64,000 nt of DNA, taken from sequence record NC_027402.1. One strand, given 5' to 3'. Made by a program: the position numbers and the translations under genes. Under the pieces are notes generated by a model. It did not search any database. It was not told the origin of the DNA and was given only the letters and a program-made list of their open reading frames with translations. Position 1 is the stretch's first letter; each line of letters begins with the position of its first letter. Below are positions 19,446 to 25,950 of this stretch, piece by piece.

Positions 19446-19482
19446 GTGCCCTCTCCTTCGGGGGAGGGTATCTTCATTTTTT
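19446..19482 (+). terminator. intrinsic terminator
   Basis: GTGCCCTCTCC-TTCG-GGGGAGGGTAT followed by a T-tract. Confidence 0.8.
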
Positions 19483-19863: not shown

Positions 19864-19911
19864 TTTACGGCCACGGCTGTACGTATGTAAAAGACCTCAA
19901 GGAGAACTATA

Positions 19912-20334
19912 ATGAACAATATCGCGTTTGAAAAAGGCGTTGGGTTACTTCTGAACAACACCATCGTCGCTGGCACTAATAACGCTAACTGGGAAGCGTT
20001 AGCGCAACGTCTCAAAGACAAGCCTGTGAAGATTGTGGTAACGAGCGAGCTGCCGTTAAACGGCACGATGGCGGACTGTGGTCCAATGTTTGCAGCGTTT
20101 AACGTCGACTATGATTGCGGTTCCGCTTTCTTACAAAACGCGGCGTTACGTAGTCGTCTGTACAGCTGGCGTTTGTTGGGTCCGGTAAGTAAAGCCGCTG
20201 GCCAGATGGTTAACCAGGGCACACCGATGTCGGGTGTAGAAGACCAGACTATCGCCGTTGTGGTTTCTCGCGCAACCGGCCAGCTTAACTTTGCAATCTG
20301 CTACGCGTATCAGGAGGAAGAAGTCTGTGCCTAG
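19912..20334 (+). CDS. hypothetical protein (140 aa)
   Basis: RBS AAGGAG. Confidence 0.7.
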   Translation: MNNIAFEKGVGLLLNNTIVAGTNNANWEALAQRLKDKPVKIVVTSELPLNGTMADCGPMFAAFNVDYDCGSAFLQNAALRSRLYSWRLLGPVSKAAGQMVNQGTPMSGVEDQTIAVVVSRATGQLNFAICYAYQEEEVCA

Positions 20335-21196
20335 CATCATTCAGCAAGTTCAGGCAGTCGAAGAATGGTTTCGCAAGACAGACATTTACCAACAGAAAGC
20401 GACTGAGCGTCAGTTGGTAAAGTATTACGTCACACTCGGCAGGATCTCAGCAGGTGTCGATGAACTGGATAACCTAAAGGTGGCTGCCGGTATCGGCGAA
20501 TCGATTTGGACATTTGCCGCGCTGCTACACCTCGGTCCACATTCTAACTTCGGCGATATTATCGTTCCGCTGAGTGACGCGCTATCCGTTCGTACTACAA
20601 CTGGAACGAAAGAAGGGCAGCTGCAGCAACTCATGTTAATTGCGGTCGAGGCCGTTAGTGTTGTTTTGCGAGAACCAGAACACGACCCTAAGAGTTACAG
20701 CGCGCTGCTTCGTAAGTTGATGAGGCAGTATCAATTGTTAGCGTGTCGCTGCGGGCTGGAGTTTGACCGCGTTGTTTTTAACGGTCATCGTAAGCTCGTT
20801 AAGACTCCCGAAACATTAAGCACGCTCGGCGAACTGCTTAAAGCAACGTTGCCGTTACCCGACAACGATTTGGCGAAACAAACCTATCAGGCGGTGTACA
20901 AAACCAACGAGTCAGTTCACGACATTATTGTAAATTGCCTTTTGGCCACATCGAATGATTTACAAACCAAACATAACGGTGAAGTCGCCATGCCGCAGCT
21001 ATTGCTGCGGATGGAGGACATTATGAACGAAAAGCTGCAAGAGCTTCTCAAGGCGCACTTTGAACCGTGGATAGTAAGAAAACAAATGTTGTTCAATCGT
21101 AACCCTCGCGTTGATGTTAAGTTCGATGGTAACGCTGTAAACATTTGTGCGAACGACGATTTAAGAGACATTTTGAATTTATTGAAAGGAAAATAA
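20327..21196 (+). CDS. degenerate (pseudoenzyme) paralog of the MazG-like NTP pyrophosphohydrolase
   Basis: GTG 20327 after AGGAGG. Gapless alignment to the 24558 ORF (W..I..Q..K.Y...G....G..GIG; DI.....DA.S.....G..AV), but the metal-binding EExxE and D residues are replaced. Confidence 0.6.
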
Positions 21197-21198
21197 TT

Positions 21199-22236
21199 GT
21201 GAAACAATATCTTGAGATGATGCAGAACATTCTGGACGAGGGTCATGTTAAAGGCGATCGTACTGGAACAGGGACGCTTTCTGTCTTTGGACGCCAGATG
21301 CGTTTTGATTTGCGTAAAGGTTTCCCGTTAGTCACGACTAAGAAACTCCACCTGCGTTCTATTATCCATGAACTGCTGTGGTTCCTTAGTGGGGATACCA
21401 ACACCAAATATCTGGAAGATAACGGCGTTACCATTTGGCGGGAGTGGCAAGATGAAAATGGGAACCTTGGCCCCCTGTATGGTGCACAATGGAGACGTTG
21501 GAAAGATGTGAAACTGGTGCCTAAGAAAAATGCAGCTTTACTCGAGAAACTGCAAGCTGCTGGATACGCGGATTATGGCGACGCGGACGACGGTTCACAA
21601 ATGTTCGATGCGCGTGTACTTCTGAAAGAGCACGACCAGATCTCTAAGGTGATTGACCAGCTGCGTAACGATCCTGACAGTCGCCGTATTATTGTCAGCG
21701 CATGGAACGTGGGTGAGTTGGATCAAATGGCGTTAGCTCCGTGTCATGCGTTCTTTCAGTTCTACACTCGTGAGCTGTCTATCGACGAGCGTCTTGATTG
21801 GTTTGAAAAGAACCTTCCAGATCAATTTAACGATTCCCGCTTTAGTAATGAAGCTGTAGCAGATGACGCAGTGTTCCACGTTGAGATGGACGCACTTGAA
21901 ATACCTCGCCGCATTCTTTCATGTCAGCTCTATCAACGCAGTGCGGATTTTTTCCTCGGCGTGCCGTTCAACATCGCGTCTTACGCATTACTCGTGCACA
22001 TGGTTGCCCAGCAGGTTAACATGGTGCCGGGCGATTTCATTTGGACGGGCGGTGACACACATCTCTACTCTAATCATCTGGAGCAGGCCAAGCTCCAGCT
22101 GACGCGTGAGCCGTTACCTTTACCGAAACTGATCATCAAGCGTAAACCGGAATCTATCTTCGATTATAAATTCGAAGATTTTGAGATCGTTGGGTATCAG
22201 TCTCATGAAAAAATATCTGCACCGGTGGCTATCTAA
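21199..22236 (+). CDS. thyA: thymidylate synthase (with two loop insertions)
   Basis: [61 protein letters not shown] and HLYSNH. True start is GTG 21199 after GGA. Confidence 0.97.
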
Positions 22237-22248
22237 TTAGGAGCGTTT

Positions 22249-22785
22249 ATGGCTGACAACGTCGTTCCCTTCAAGCCTAAAGCGGTGGTTACCACGGACG
22301 AACCACCGTTCATTCCTATCAATGGACAGAAAATCGTGGAGTTTCCGGATGAGCACCGTGGACAACTTCACGTGCCGCAGCCGGACGGTACGATGAAAGC
22401 TATCGGCTTCCCGATAGCTGAGCAGGAATGGTGGACGCTACTGGCTATTCAGATGATGACTCGTGGTCTGGGTGAATCTATGGAACCAGTCGTCCGTATT
22501 AACACCGATCCGTATATCCACGAACAAGGTAGCTGGATGGAACGGCGTCGGACAATGGAGATACAGATTAGCAAAGAAACGCTTTTGCAAATCGCCGAGT
22601 CCACACCCTTTATCCTGACCTCGTCTTTTAACGGAGATATGGATGAAGACCTCTACATGCATCTTTCAGGCTTAGCAGCCGAGCACCGTATTGCAGAGGA
22701 AGAACCTATCTATACCGAAGCGATGATTATCCATCCGACTGGCTTAGAAGGTAATACCTTTAAACTGATTTGGGTGGAGCTATGA
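22249..22785 (+). CDS. hypothetical protein (178 aa)
   Basis: RBS AGGAG. Confidence 0.7.
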   Translation: MADNVVPFKPKAVVTTDEPPFIPINGQKIVEFPDEHRGQLHVPQPDGTMKAIGFPIAEQEWWTLLAIQMMTRGLGESMEPVVRINTDPYIHEQGSWMERRRTMEIQISKETLLQIAESTPFILTSSFNGDMDEDLYMHLSGLAAEHRIAEEEPIYTEAMIIHPTGLEGNTFKLIWVEL

Positions 22786-23033
22786 CAGACCGTCTCAGTA
22801 AAACAATTCGACTACCACAACAGCGTAATGTCCGCAAGGGCGACGTATTCACCGCGGAAGAATGGGTCGCATTAAAAGCTCTGTTCCCGGACGAAACCGA
22901 TTCGCATGTCGTCCAAATGGCACTGAAAGAGTTTGCAAAGAACGCTCCTGAAATGCTGCTGCGTAAGAAAGAAGAAGAACTGAATATGCTCCGTAATAGC
23001 GTAGATGTTCTCTTTAAAACAATGGAGAAATAA
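22782..23033 (+). CDS. small protein, possibly ribbon-helix-helix DNA-binding
   Basis: ATGA overlap with the previous gene. Strand KTIRL, helix AEEWVALKALF, then TDSHVVQMALKEF; C-terminal coiled coil. Confidence 0.45.
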   Translation: MTDRLSKTIRLPQQRNVRKGDVFTAEEWVALKALFPDETDSHVVQMALKEFAKNAPEMLLRKKEEELNMLRNSVDVLFKTMEK

Positions 23034-23034
23034 G

Positions 23035-23802
23035 ATGATGAAACTCTTTGCGTTCTCCGATGAATTCTACACGGTGGAATTCGACGACTACGAATACGGG
23101 TTATTAGGGGCCGTCGACATGGAGGACGCTAAACGGCAGCTTCCTACTAGCGAAATAGAAATCATTGAGATTGGGGAAACTAATCTTAGTGGGATTTTGA
23201 TGCTGGGGCGGCGACCACGACCTGCGGAACCTGAGCAGGAAAGAGAGCAAGTGCAAGCGATTTGTCTGGTCTATGAGCCGATAGACCCTGCAGCGATAGC
23301 GAAGGTGGTCGATACACTACGGCCACAGATTGGCGTCGCGATTGAAAATTATCGCTGGGCTCGTTTCTCAGGCGACACGCCGATATTTTCGAATAAGCAC
23401 TGGTTGCTGTGTATCAACAACGACACGATAATGGTACCTTTAACAGGGGAGAAGAATTTTGAAGATAACTTCGTCCCTGGCGAAGAGTCTGTTATCTTCG
23501 AGTATACCCATGTCATCGGAAAGCCGAGCTTCTACCAAGTTCTGATTGATGTATTGACTCACGTCGGTCGAACCATCGAATACCACTACTGGGCACGCCA
23601 TGCGCGTTTTAAATGGTTCTCGTTGACGTACGTCGAAGGTTGGGAACGTGTTGTTGAAAAGATTGACGGGCGCTATGAGCAGATTTGGTTCCTGAACCCG
23701 GCATTCCGTGAAGAATTACCCGCATGGGTAAAAGAAGAGGCGAGCAAGCTGACGGTTGGCTTTACTAAGCAGGGCGCGCCGTATATGGTTAACTACAAAT
23801 AA
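23035..23802 (+). CDS. hypothetical protein (255 aa)
   Basis: ATG directly after the previous stop, RBS GGAG. Confidence 0.7.
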   Translation: MMKLFAFSDEFYTVEFDDYEYGLLGAVDMEDAKRQLPTSEIEIIEIGETNLSGILMLGRRPRPAEPEQEREQVQAICLVYEPIDPAAIAKVVDTLRPQIGVAIENYRWARFSGDTPIFSNKHWLLCINNDTIMVPLTGEKNFEDNFVPGEESVIFEYTHVIGKPSFYQVLIDVLTHVGRTIEYHYWARHARFKWFSLTYVEGWERVVEKIDGRYEQIWFLNPAFREELPAWVKEEASKLTVGFTKQGAPYMVNYK

Positions 23803-23813
23803 GGTGAAAACAG

Positions 23814-24293
23814 ATGTCTATAACTCGGATCGATTATCGCGCCGTAGTAAAAGAACTGTCCAAAGGTCTTATCGAACTGGACTCCGATGAAGCCCGTAGC
23901 TGTGGCTTTTTACCGCATATTGCACTGAGCGAGTTCCGCACTATCCGCTATGGCGCTGGTCGTCAGAAAGGCGTTACAACACACGCTGTTGATATGTCAG
24001 CAAAGTTCCACGGCAGCGTTCTGTATCTGGTTCACAATGAAGCGTTACGGAGCGAAGTGGTGGAGAAATTCCATGAAAAAGCCGCTGGGAACGGTTGGCT
24101 GACCGTGCACTGTAACTACTTGCCTGAGGGTTGGAAACGCGCGACGGGTGCTGGTATATCCGGCTACGAGAAATTCGGCTTGGTTATTGTCGATGAAGCG
24201 GGTTTCTTCTTCAACAAGTTCAGTTACGATAAAATCTATCGCAGTCTGGTCGACGTAGTAACGCCAGACGTTGTGATACACCTGATTAATTAA
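23814..24293 (+). CDS. small stand-alone P-loop/terminase-ATPase-like domain, Walker A Lys replaced
   Basis: GAGRQKGVTT (compare RQHGKT of the terminase in this window) and Walker B LVIVDEA; only 159 aa. Confidence 0.55.
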   Translation: MSITRIDYRAVVKELSKGLIELDSDEARSCGFLPHIALSEFRTIRYGAGRQKGVTTHAVDMSAKFHGSVLYLVHNEALRSEVVEKFHEKAAGNGWLTVHCNYLPEGWKRATGAGISGYEKFGLVIVDEAGFFFNKFSYDKIYRSLVDVVTPDVVIHLIN

Positions 24294-24305
24294 GTAGAGG
24301 AAAAT

Positions 24306-24494
24306 ATGGCTGGAGAACTCGGTCGTGGGCAAGCCACAACGTTCATGCATCGTGATGGGTTAGGTGCGGATGTAAACATGTCTCCGGATGACGAGATGGT
24401 TATCCCTGGACTTGACCCTGACGCAGGTGTGGAAGGTGGCGTTGACCCGTCGAAAGACGACGACAACTGCACTGGTGGTGCGTGCAAGATTTAA
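24306..24494 (+). CDS. 62-aa acidic peptide resembling the NrdA C-terminal redox tail
   Basis: RBS AGAGG, terminator immediately after. Ends PSKDDDNCTGGACKI* versus E. coli NrdA PSIQDDGCESGACKI*. Confidence 0.7.
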   Translation: MAGELGRGQATTFMHRDGLGADVNMSPDDEMVIPGLDPDAGVEGGVDPSKDDDNCTGGACKI

Positions 24495-24503
24495 AATACG
24501 TAT

Positions 24504-24539
24504 TAGGGTGTCCATATGGACACCCTACTTATTTTTTTT
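24504..24539 (+). terminator. intrinsic terminator
   Basis: Perfect 24-bp palindrome TAGGGTGTCC-ATAT-GGACACCCTA followed by a T-run. Confidence 0.85.
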
Positions 24540-24557
24540 GTTTAAGGAGCTATCAAA

Positions 24558-25499
24558 ATGGGCGACCGTTTCATTATCCAGATTCCGTATAACGTTATTG
24601 TTGAACCTAACCAGTACCTGGCACAGATTAATGAGCTTCTGGCTGGATTCTGCCAACGTCAGTTTGTTGAACCGTGGTCCTTTGAGAAACTGTACACCCT
24701 GTGCGTGAACAGTGAAACCGGTCACACTTACGTCGAAGGTAAAGTATTCACAGGCGACCAGAGTTTGGAAATAAATGATTTCGAAATGCCGTGGACGTTG
24801 GAAGGTGTCGAGTATCGTGGTACGGTTGATCGTCCACGTTACGTACCTTTGTACACCATCCCACAATGTATTACTAACGTTATGGGTTGGTCTAAAGCGC
24901 GTGGTATTCTGGATAACGGCGTCTGGTATAGCCAAGCCACCAAACTCTACGAAGAAGACGGTGAAGCGGCAACCGGTATCAGTAAAAACAAACGTCGTTA
25001 CATCATGGACGGTATCGGTGATGCTCTGGTCGTGTTGGTTAACTTGATGGAACTCATTAAGTTTGACTCAACCGATATCAGCACATACGTCAACGACGCA
25101 CGTTCAAAGAAACCACACGCCGGGAACAGTCATTACCTGTTCCACAAAATGCGTTTCCATCTTACTTGTGCAGTTGATTATATCTGGGATCAGGCAGGCA
25201 TCGACTCAGCTAAGCAACTCGAATATAAACACTTCGAGAACAGCGACGCGGTAATGATCGAATGTCACTTCGCTCAGATGGTCGAATACGCCAATGCGCT
25301 GGCTATTGCGTACGATATGACTCTGGAACAGTGCTTCTCCTTGGCGTGGGATGAAATCAAAGACCGTAAGGGTTTCCTGAATGCGGACGGTATCTTCGTT
25401 AAAGAAGCAGACATGACTGCTGCTGAAATCGAAGTAAACGGTTCCCTTACTGTAAAAGATGAGGCGTTTACCGATGGCGAAGAAACTGTTCACGGTTGA
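24558..25499 (+). CDS. mazG: MazG-like NTP pyrophosphohydrolase with N-terminal extra domain and internal insertion
   Basis: WSKARGI...QATKLYEEDGE...DGIGDALVVL and AWDEIKDRKG...GIFVKEAD, hallmarks of the phage MazG-like family. Confidence 0.82.
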   Translation: MGDRFIIQIPYNVIVEPNQYLAQINELLAGFCQRQFVEPWSFEKLYTLCVNSETGHTYVEGKVFTGDQSLEINDFEMPWTLEGVEYRGTVDRPRYVPLYTIPQCITNVMGWSKARGILDNGVWYSQATKLYEEDGEAATGISKNKRRYIMDGIGDALVVLVNLMELIKFDSTDISTYVNDARSKKPHAGNSHYLFHKMRFHLTCAVDYIWDQAGIDSAKQLEYKHFENSDAVMIECHFAQMVEYANALAIAYDMTLEQCFSLAWDEIKDRKGFLNADGIFVKEADMTAAEIEVNGSLTVKDEAFTDGEETVHG

Positions 25500-25896
25500 T
25501 TACGACGAATACGTTGATCGTTTACTGGTCAACAATATCGTCTGGGAAGACCACGGTCTAATGCCATGGCATCTGAAATTCCTAGCGGAGCGTTCAGAAC
25601 AATGCGGTGGTTTGGAGTTCGTACTCACCGACACACCAATTCCGGTACCACACATTGCGCCGGTAGAAAATCTGTACTTCTTCGATGCTAATGTGAAGTT
25701 ATTACAGCAGGTACTCTATACACACGACTGGCGTGGTGGTTGTCAGTTCCCAGAGAACGTTTTAAAGCTCTCTGAGCGCTTCGGCACCGACATTGCATAT
25801 TGCCAAACGTTTCCAAAAGACTTGGGACGAAACAGTGTGGTGTTGTGGTATTACCCTCCGGTAGAAGATATCGTAAAAGTGATTATCGAACGCTAA
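25474..25896 (+). CDS. hypothetical protein (140 aa)
   Basis: ATG 25474 after GAGG; overlaps the end of mazG. Confidence 0.65.
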   Translation: MAKKLFTVDYDEYVDRLLVNNIVWEDHGLMPWHLKFLAERSEQCGGLEFVLTDTPIPVPHIAPVENLYFFDANVKLLQQVLYTHDWRGGCQFPENVLKLSERFGTDIAYCQTFPKDLGRNSVVLWYYPPVEDIVKVIIER

Positions 25897-25950
25897 AAAT
25901 AAAAGCAAACGAGTACCCCGTTAGGGGTACTCGCATTACTTATTTTTTTG
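25896..25950. terminator. bidirectional intrinsic terminator
   Basis: CGAGTACCCC-GTTA-GGGGTACTCG with A-rich and T-rich flanks, between convergent genes. Confidence 0.85.

Follow-up and report, generated by a model that had tools for sequence, protein, structure and literature searches.

A MazG-like protein, probably non-catalytic, encoded upstream of thyA in the Salmonella jumbo phage SPN3US

Genes of the thyA region

The 64,000-nucleotide stretch of sequence record NC_027402.1 analysed here (the window, whose positions are used throughout; all features named lie on its + strand) is 100% identical over bases 19900–25900 to Salmonella phage SPN3US, a 240-kilobase (kb) jumbo phage of the genus Seoulvirus. 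Our subject is gene SPN3US_0228, whose product gp228 (20327–21196; YP_009153522; 289 amino acids; PHROG 10269) is annotated as hypothetical, and its relationship to gp235 (SPN3US_0235; 24558–25499; YP_009153529; 313 amino acids; PHROG 7855), which is called MazG in RefSeq and has its motifs intact. The genes run in the order gp228, thyA (SPN3US_0229), five small hypothetical genes and gp235, with 3.4 kb and those five genes separating gp228 from gp235. An earlier reading, made from the letters of this DNA without database searches (the sequence-only reading below), had described an active MazG-like enzyme and a catalytically dead paralogue flanking thyA; both of its reading frames are annotated SPN3US coding sequences, and thyA does lie between them. 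We are highly confident that gp228 is a MazG-like paralogue that lacks the metal ligands and is kept by selection; what it does for the phage is a more tentative matter.

The two proteins are built from different sets of modules around a common core. In gp228 an N-terminal all-α domain (residues 1–162; 20327–20812), homologous to the gp235 MazG-like domain by hhalign, is predicted by AlphaFold2 with a predicted local distance difference test score (pLDDT) mostly of 85–94 and matches phage nucleoside triphosphate (NTP) pyrophosphatases in BFVD; within it, residues 35–58 (20429–20500) stand opposite the two metal-ligand helices of gp235 in the family alignment. Residues 163–191 (20813–20899), a linker together with a degenerate match of the C-terminal hairpin tail of gp235 according to the hhalign pairing and column counts, are predicted to be disordered (pLDDT <50). 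The C-terminal domain (residues 192–289; 20900–21193) consists, by AlphaFold2 and the alignments, of two long helices, a β hairpin and a further helix, and is specific to the gp228 family. In gp235 an N-terminal α/β domain (residues 1–97; 24558–24848; AlphaFold2), which varies among phages, precedes the MazG-like domain, which carries a helical insert and a β-hairpin tail (residues 98–287; 24849–25418; alignment and AlphaFold2).

Homology of gp228 and gp235

Compared directly, gp228 and gp235 share 23 identities over 111 positions with one gap (BLASTP, E 0.005 for the single comparison), a match that taken alone is marginal and suggestive only. The stretches quoted in the sequence-only reading align as claimed there, and the sole BLASTP gap falls outside its 59-residue block. 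Alignments of the two families, one of gp228 orthologues from four phage genera and one of gp235 relatives, give a far stronger signal: hhalign pairs gp228 residues 3–177 with gp235 residues 98–285 over 174 columns with a probability of 96.5% (E 9.9e-10), and the match improves to 97.1% (E 4.9e-11) with the flanking domains removed, when the gp228 N-terminal domain is set against the gp235 MazG domain. A hidden Markov model (HMM) of the gp228 family scores all gp235 orthologues at 26–55 bits, the gp235-family HMM scores gp228 orthologues at up to 43 bits, and the PHROG profiles cross-match as well, gp235 with PHROG 10269, the gp228 family (3.3e-7), and gp228 with the MazG-like PHROG 715 (1.5e-3). 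The AlphaFold2 models of gp228 (pLDDT 80.7) and gp235 (pLDDT 87.4) present seven helices in identical order with an offset of 97 residues, that of gp228 being all-helical across residues 1–160. When the gp228 model was compared with BFVD by Foldseek, its own family came first, followed by the Wellington orthologue of gp235 (E 8e-4) and then by phage NTP pyrophosphatases (E 8e-4 to 1e-3). The profile alignment and structure prediction that had been proposed as a check thus bear out the common fold (96.5% probability, matching order of the seven helices), and a non-MazG fold was not seen.

These results indicate that gp228 is a homologue, and most likely a paralogue, of the phage's own long-type MazG-like pyrophosphatase gp235. 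Paralogy is suggested by the scores that the gp228 profile gives to co-resident gp235 orthologues, 27–55 bits, as against 1–28 bits for the MazG-like proteins of unrelated phages. Neither of the two narrow family alignments (gp228 and gp235) found anything when searched as a profile against the PDB, and Pfam PF03819 has no match to gp228 or its 11 aligned relatives. The depositor's note on the gp228 orthologue of phage pSal-SNUABM-04 in GenBank mentions a CDD MazG-type domain, so the MazG-type fold had been glimpsed before; it was never interpreted. The mentions of "gp228" and "gp235" found in a search for literature on the two SPN3US proteins concerned other phages.

No third MazG-like paralogue was detected by the family HMMs in the window or in related loci. 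For the C-terminal domain of gp228 neither the gp235 N-terminal domain, nor the C-terminal extension of the Wellingtonvirus MazG protein, nor the MazG domain itself is a credible relative (all hhalign probabilities ≤0.9%), and Pfam, NCBIfam and PADLOC returned no meaningful match for it.

Loss of the metal ligands in the gp228 family

The assignment of gp235 itself is sound at the family level. It scores 17.7 bits against Pfam PF03819, under the gathering threshold of 22, and sub-threshold matches to this model occur in 13 of 20 gp235 relatives (best E 0.0011); its PHROG matches are strong (PHROG 7855 at 3.8e-145, 1992 at 8.8e-38 and 715 at 3.6e-24). Only a broader alignment, to which MazG-like proteins of Streptococcus, Vibrio, Xanthomonas, Klebsiella, Acinetobacter and Serratia phages were added, reaches solved MazG/YpjD-type enzymes (E 3.3e-4 to 0.02), and it does so exactly at the two ligand helices. 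The MazG enzymes of known structure bind Mg2+ through four acidic residues of these helices and have no activity unless the metal is present (PMC10014863). The corresponding E132, E133, E136, D151 and D155 are invariant in gp235 and its 13 orthologues (14/14), and the charged residues of the last helix are likewise kept in all of these proteins. It is a reasonable inference that gp235 is an active pyrophosphatase, because its motifs are intact.

The gp228 family has gone the other way. We aligned 19 of its members, from the four genera and from metagenomes, jointly with the 14 gp235 orthologues. V35, T36, R39 and A54 of SPN3US gp228 stand opposite E132, E133, E136 and D151 of gp235, which agrees with the earlier statement that the EExxE/D ligands are replaced by VTxxR/A. 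Across the family, acidic residues are found in none of the 19 members at the E132, E133 and D151 columns, in two at the D155 column and in ten at the E136 column, and there is no invariant acidic column at all; the E132 column is an arginine in 18 of the 19 and a valine in SPN3US. E266, K268 and D269 of the last helix, which are invariant in the active relatives, are also lost, and R270 remains only as a lysine, in 11/19. The structural framework, on the other hand, has been retained: the W111, Q126, G135, G154 and G278 columns are kept in every member and K129, G140, K143, G272 and F280 in 18 of 19, while the Y131 column is a tyrosine in 16. The sequence-only reading had also held that the RKG...FVKE tail is missing from gp228. 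This applies loosely to the SPN3US allele, in which the tail (the G272, G278 and F280 columns) is degenerate, and it does not apply to the family, since the tail is recognisable in most orthologues and its columns are kept in 18–19 of the 19 members. The SPN3US-type allele departs from its own family elsewhere too, with about ten deviations at positions that are identical in 17–18 of the other 18 members, among them the arginine and a family-specific glutamate.

From the loss of the acidic metal ligands we infer that gp228 is catalytically dead, and that this is true of the family as a whole and not of SPN3US alone. By descent and fold the protein belongs to its superfamily; it does not have the catalytic motif and does not reach the Pfam threshold. 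It could still be argued that gp228 remains a hydrolase that uses other residues, for the family-specific glutamate lies one turn past the third-ligand column in 17 of 19 members, the third-ligand column itself is acidic in the ten members noted above, and an acidic residue stands opposite gp235 E257 in 16 of 19. None of these acidic columns is invariant, however, and the two best candidate columns are occupied by R39 and A42 in SPN3US despite a low ratio of nonsynonymous to synonymous substitution (dN/dS 0.09; below). With the last-helix charges gone as well (R270 surviving only as that lysine), residual hydrolysis appears very improbable.

Selection on the gene and its expression

A gene that has lost its catalytic residues might simply be a functionless duplicate in decay, and it is true that the SPN3US allele is degenerate even in comparison with its own family and that its tail is predicted to be disordered. 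The pattern of substitution argues strongly against this. In pairs with unsaturated synonymous sites the Nei-Gojobori (NG86) dN/dS of gp228 is 0.07–0.17 (0.38 in one recombinant pair), and between the SPN3US allele and an allele with 83% identity to it the value is 0.09, just as low for the N-terminal as for the C-terminal domain. All good-quality genomes of the four genera have an intact reading frame, and the family has 12–14 invariant columns. Thus gp228 is no relic; purifying selection maintains the gene, and the decaying-duplicate explanation is close to refuted. Because the gene is kept by purifying selection, the label "pseudoenzyme" fits gp228, and the sequence-only reading was right to describe a catalytically dead paralogue, which it had seen in a single allele and which holds for the 19-member family. 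Nine SPFM phage records (LR535901–LR535917) were excluded from these comparisons, their gp228 having matched in 5–10 separate tblastn pieces each; since the genomes are otherwise near-identical, these frame disruptions, several per record, probably reflect errors of sequencing or assembly and do not mark true pseudogenes.

The arrangement of the gene also speaks for its expression and against decay. A Shine-Dalgarno-like AGGAGG, read from the sequence at 20312–20317, lies 9 nucleotides 5' of the GTG start of gp228. The upstream gene gp227 (SPN3US_0227; 19912–20334; 140 amino acids, hypothetical, PHROG 9744 without known function) overlaps that start with its stop by 8 nucleotides, and the likely GTG start of thyA at 21199 comes 2 nucleotides past the gp228 stop. 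This strong predicted ribosome-binding site and the operon-like packing suggest that gp228 is made as a protein. Our literature search found no proteome or transcriptome data on SPN3US gp228.

The thyA gene (21199–22236; thymidylate synthase, Pfam PF00303, E 4.6e-112) is annotated in SPN3US with an ATG start at 21220, which is probably seven codons too late. The GTG at 21199 follows a purine-rich stretch, and its use restores N-terminal residues common to all 13 ThyA orthologues. The SPFM4 record annotates the earlier start.

Distribution, linkage to thyA and the case for a mixed oligomer

The gp228 family is small and confined to SPN3US-like genera. When 1.84 billion cluster representatives were searched exhaustively with phmmer, only 13 matched gp228, and a profile search of 5.8 billion proteins gave 79, all of the gp228 family; every one that its source had named is called hypothetical. 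On these 13 clusters and 79 proteins, all of the same family, a wider gp228 family was rejected. Salmonella and E. coli assemblies hold several hundred Seoulvirus-like contigs of about 240 kb. The orthologues occur in Seoulvirus, Erskinevirus, Machinavirus and Wellingtonvirus (14 phage genomes) and in metagenome contigs, and in all of these they lie immediately upstream of thyA; in 17 of 18 loci the gap between the two genes is 3 nucleotides or less or the genes overlap. The sequence-only reading had taken thyA as a mere landmark between the two MazG-like genes, yet it is to thyA that gp228 is strictly linked. As regards gp235, both genes are present in all 14 checked genomes of the four genera, while the Derbicusvirus phages CR5 and EarlPhillipIV have thyA and a gp235 orthologue and no gp228, and the gp235-type MazG-like domain occurs in many unrelated or small phages.

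Terminator-like signals separate the two genes further. Just 5' of gp235 a consensus scan finds a hairpin of 10 pairs (6 G-C) followed by a T-run (given as 24504–24540 and as 24504–24527), and further strong intergenic + strand hairpins with T-runs lie at 19446–19471 and at 25910–25933, the latter bidirectional and between convergent genes; 17 terminator-like sites were counted in the region, where shuffling predicts 8.2. From the positions of these hairpins, which are consensus patterns only, gp226 through gp234 (with gp228 and thyA) look like one putative transcription unit and gp235-gp236 like the next.

These observations bear on one of the functions first proposed for the pair, that gp228 and active gp235 form a mixed oligomer in which gp228 tunes or silences the pyrophosphatase. 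The common fold, the dimeric or tetrameric state of MazG-family enzymes (PMC10014863), the presence of both genes throughout the four genera and the location on the same helices of the residues conserved across both families are all in keeping with such a heteromer. It is harder to square with the distance between the genes and the hairpin that stands before gp235, and with the gp235 orthologues and many small-phage MazG-like domains that exist where gp228 does not. Coupled evolution of the two proteins, which a heteromer predicts, is not seen, so the model is unsupported: the identities of gp228 and gp235 are 39% and 98% between SPN3US and phage EC001, 86% and 54% between ChrisDB and SNUABM_8, and 71% and 99% between Machina and pSal-SNUABM-04. 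The Spearman correlation of gp228 and gp235 identities is 0.19–0.44, which shared phylogeny alone could explain. Hetero-oligomeric tuning of gp235, one of the ideas of the sequence-only reading, thus finds no support in these uncoupled identities and hairpin-separated putative units, and we consider it distinctly unlikely.

Two further features of the gp235 locus may be mentioned. The Wellingtonvirus orthologues of gp235 (L009:8443-9825 and L010:9119-10453 in our set of loci) have a C-terminal extension of about 150 residues, which has no detectable relation to the gp228 C-terminal domain (hhalign probability 0.1%). In the Erwinia phages of the genera Erskinevirus and Machinavirus an extra gene of about 275–285 amino acids directly follows the MazG gene (L004:10848-11675, L005:11237-12061 and L012:7867-8721); by HMM it is unrelated to either MazG-like family, and SPN3US does not have it.

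Allele exchange and mosaicism

Among close relatives gp228 is a sharply bounded mosaic element. SPN3US and EC001 belong to one species, and their DNA identity is 95–100% up to base 20300, falls to 37–70% exactly over gp228 and is 87–98% again within thyA; their gp227 proteins are 99% identical. Between SPN3US and the phage that carries the 83%-identity allele, synonymous divergence is 1.08 in gp228, 0.12–0.17 in gp227 and thyA, and 0.48 in gp230. (A gap in the gene table of this phage had suggested that its gp235 is broken; this was rejected, as the frame is intact.) Between Machina and pSal-SNUABM-04 the C-terminal domain of gp228 alone has been replaced. A Seoulvirus-like metagenome contig (L026:4141-6379) carries a full EC001-type gp228, then a free-standing 112-amino-acid copy of the C-terminal domain (41% identical to the SPN3US type) and then thyA, and the domain is absent from the Wellingtonvirus proteins (191-amino-acid gp228) and from the Caitlin orthologue. 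Because the C-terminal domain has been swapped alone, duplicated or left out, the two domains of gp228 are separable modules, and the gene as a whole exists as several old alleles that recombination has moved between near-identical genomes.

Mosaicism in this region is not confined to gp228, the ThyA inserts and the gp235 N-terminal domain being similarly mosaic. The ThyA core (72–96% identity) is cut by two or three hypervariable insert blocks, each of which is exchanged between phages without regard to the core or to the other blocks; in EC001 and Caitlin, for example, one insert is 91% identical and the core 77%. thyA was listed among the "positively selected" genes of SPFM phages in a published screen (PMC6614189). 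The gp235 N-terminal domain (about 97 residues) is predicted as a helix packed against an antiparallel sheet, with weak matches to cystatin/monellin-like folds, and behaves as a swapped module, with 16–98% identity between orthologues whose MazG domains are far more similar.

Such a history would suit a protein of phage-host conflict, one that captures without hydrolysis a nucleotide used in immune signalling, an alarmone or a toxic nucleotide analogue, or that acts as a decoy for a host factor directed at MazG-like or ThyA-linked proteins. The diversity of the alleles is deep (synonymous sites are saturated) within flanks that are 95–100% identical, the replaced segments have sharp boundaries, purifying selection acts on each allele, and the C-terminal domain moves by itself or is duplicated; the framework residues, moreover, have been kept and the metal ligands have not. 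There is also a precedent in the phage-encoded MazG-like protein Atd1, which counters TIR-based defence by removal of (p)ppGpp (bioRxiv 10.1101/2022.06.09.495361). On the other hand, gp228 resembles no described sponge or anti-defence family in PHROG, BFVD or PADLOC (PADLOC had no match for gp228, three of its orthologues or the neighbouring genes), it sits in a putative nucleotide-metabolism operon, and the ThyA inserts and gp235 N-terminal domain are equally mosaic, so the region as a whole may be prone to exchange. The suggestions of the sequence-only reading that gp228 could sequester nucleotides or act as a decoy may still apply; overall we regard a role in conflict as unlikely, though it is our second choice.

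A possible role for gp228

The explanation that we favour, with a probability of roughly 0.45, is that gp228 serves the thyA unit as a nucleotide-binding accessory protein that is itself without catalytic activity. The protein has retained the all-α fold and many framework residues, lost the metal-holding acids and, in most lineages, gained the C-terminal domain of its family. It would no longer hydrolyse nucleotides and presumably still binds a nucleotide-like ligand; the arginine that stands at the first metal-glutamate position in 18 of 19 members could contact a phosphate directly. Translated with thymidylate synthase from a compact gp227-gp228-thyA unit, it would most likely serve as a non-enzymatic sensor, adaptor or regulator of the phage's pyrimidine and deoxythymidine monophosphate (dTMP) supply rather than form part of a gp235 complex. 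Whole alleles of gp228 and, separately, its C-terminal domain are exchanged as cassettes between close phages, which suggests that whatever gp228 contacts varies between hosts or phages.

Several observations weigh against this explanation. The adjacency to thyA may merely mark the landing site of a duplicate, and in Derbicusvirus, as in most organisms, ThyA functions where there is no gp228. Co-evolution of gp228 with the ThyA inserts, at which two phage pairs had hinted, was rejected on 78 pairs that include clear counter-examples (Spearman −0.06 to 0.11). Alleles so deeply diverged and exchanged as cassettes are seen more typically in genes of conflict than in those of metabolic accessories. 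The roughly ten divergent positions of the SPN3US-type allele mean that its function may differ from that of its orthologues. Finally, Foldseek found no significant match for gp228 in the PDB, yet this is uninformative since gp235 was likewise negative (among the gp228 matches a dimeric dUTPase came 16th, and among those of gp235 a MazG-like protein came 49th, neither significantly). A variant that dispenses with any housekeeping service to ThyA would make gp228 the representative of a small family, peculiar to these jumbo phages, of non-hydrolysing MazG-fold nucleotide binders, whose several deeply diverged alleles would be kept by balancing or diversifying selection and shuffled as cassettes by recombination; this too seems to us improbable. 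We therefore rank an accessory of the thyA unit first, a conflict binder or decoy second, a heteromer with gp235 third, residual catalysis fourth and a relic last.

A fold and an origin can now be assigned to a gene listed as hypothetical in every source and conserved 5' of thyA across 240–250 kb enterobacterial jumbo phages used as model or candidate therapeutic phages. It offers a clear natural example of an all-α NTP pyrophosphatase made non-catalytic and then kept by selection, a modest addition to the known pseudoenzymes; our literature search found no described non-catalytic family of this fold. The adjacency to thyA, the cassette alleles and the detachable C-terminal domain point to an accessory layer, so far unrecognised, of either phage pyrimidine metabolism or nucleotide-based conflict. 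Should gp228 bind an alarmone or a signalling nucleotide, it would represent a new sponge fold, and should it act on ThyA, a new type of thymidylate synthase partner.

Comparison with known systems

The closest relatives of gp228 are the long-type phage MazG-like pyrophosphatases (PHROG 7855, 1992 and 715, including gp235), with which it shares the seven-helix domain, the helical insert, the C-terminal hairpin tail, the W, Q, K, Y and G framework columns and a location among genes of nucleotide metabolism. Phage MazG-like enzymes have been linked to the cleaning of nucleotide pools (PMC7824862). From these proteins gp228 differs in having none of their invariant acidic ligands and none of the conserved charged residues of the last helix, in its much faster evolution, and in the nature and place of its extra domain, which is helical and C-terminal where that of gp235 is α/β and N-terminal.

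The relation to canonical MazG/YpjD-type enzymes (5ie9, 2gta, 1vmg, 2yxh and the Mycobacterium tuberculosis MazG) is remote: the gp235-type profile matches their two metal-ligand helices at the E values given above, and the phage proteins carry in addition an insert of about 90 residues and the tail. M. tuberculosis MazG has an extra N-terminal α/β region that is needed for activity, and gp235 has one too. Atd1 is a phage-encoded MazG-like protein that acts at the phage-host interface, but it is catalytic, and gp228 could not use the same chemistry.

The all-α NTP pyrophosphatase superfamily is described as spanning MazG, HisE and the dimeric dUTPases (Moroz 2005, as cited in PMC10014863). Dimeric dUTPases and dCTPases such as the Campylobacter jejuni dUTPase (2cic) fall in the same superfamily as gp228 and gp235, although the fold matches of gp228 to 2cic (E 1.7) and to the PhiW-14 dUTPase (E 0.05) are weak and not significant. 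Phage T4 gp56 is likewise an all-α NTP pyrophosphatase of the dimeric dUTPase/dCTPase type. The product of dUTPase, deoxyuridine monophosphate, is the substrate of ThyA, which gives a rationale for the presence of a protein of this superfamily beside thyA. The MazG protein of E. coli, finally, has two MazG repeats of differing activity; there an active and a less active module are fused in one chain, whereas gp228 and gp235 are the products of separate, independently evolving genes that lie 3.4 kb apart.

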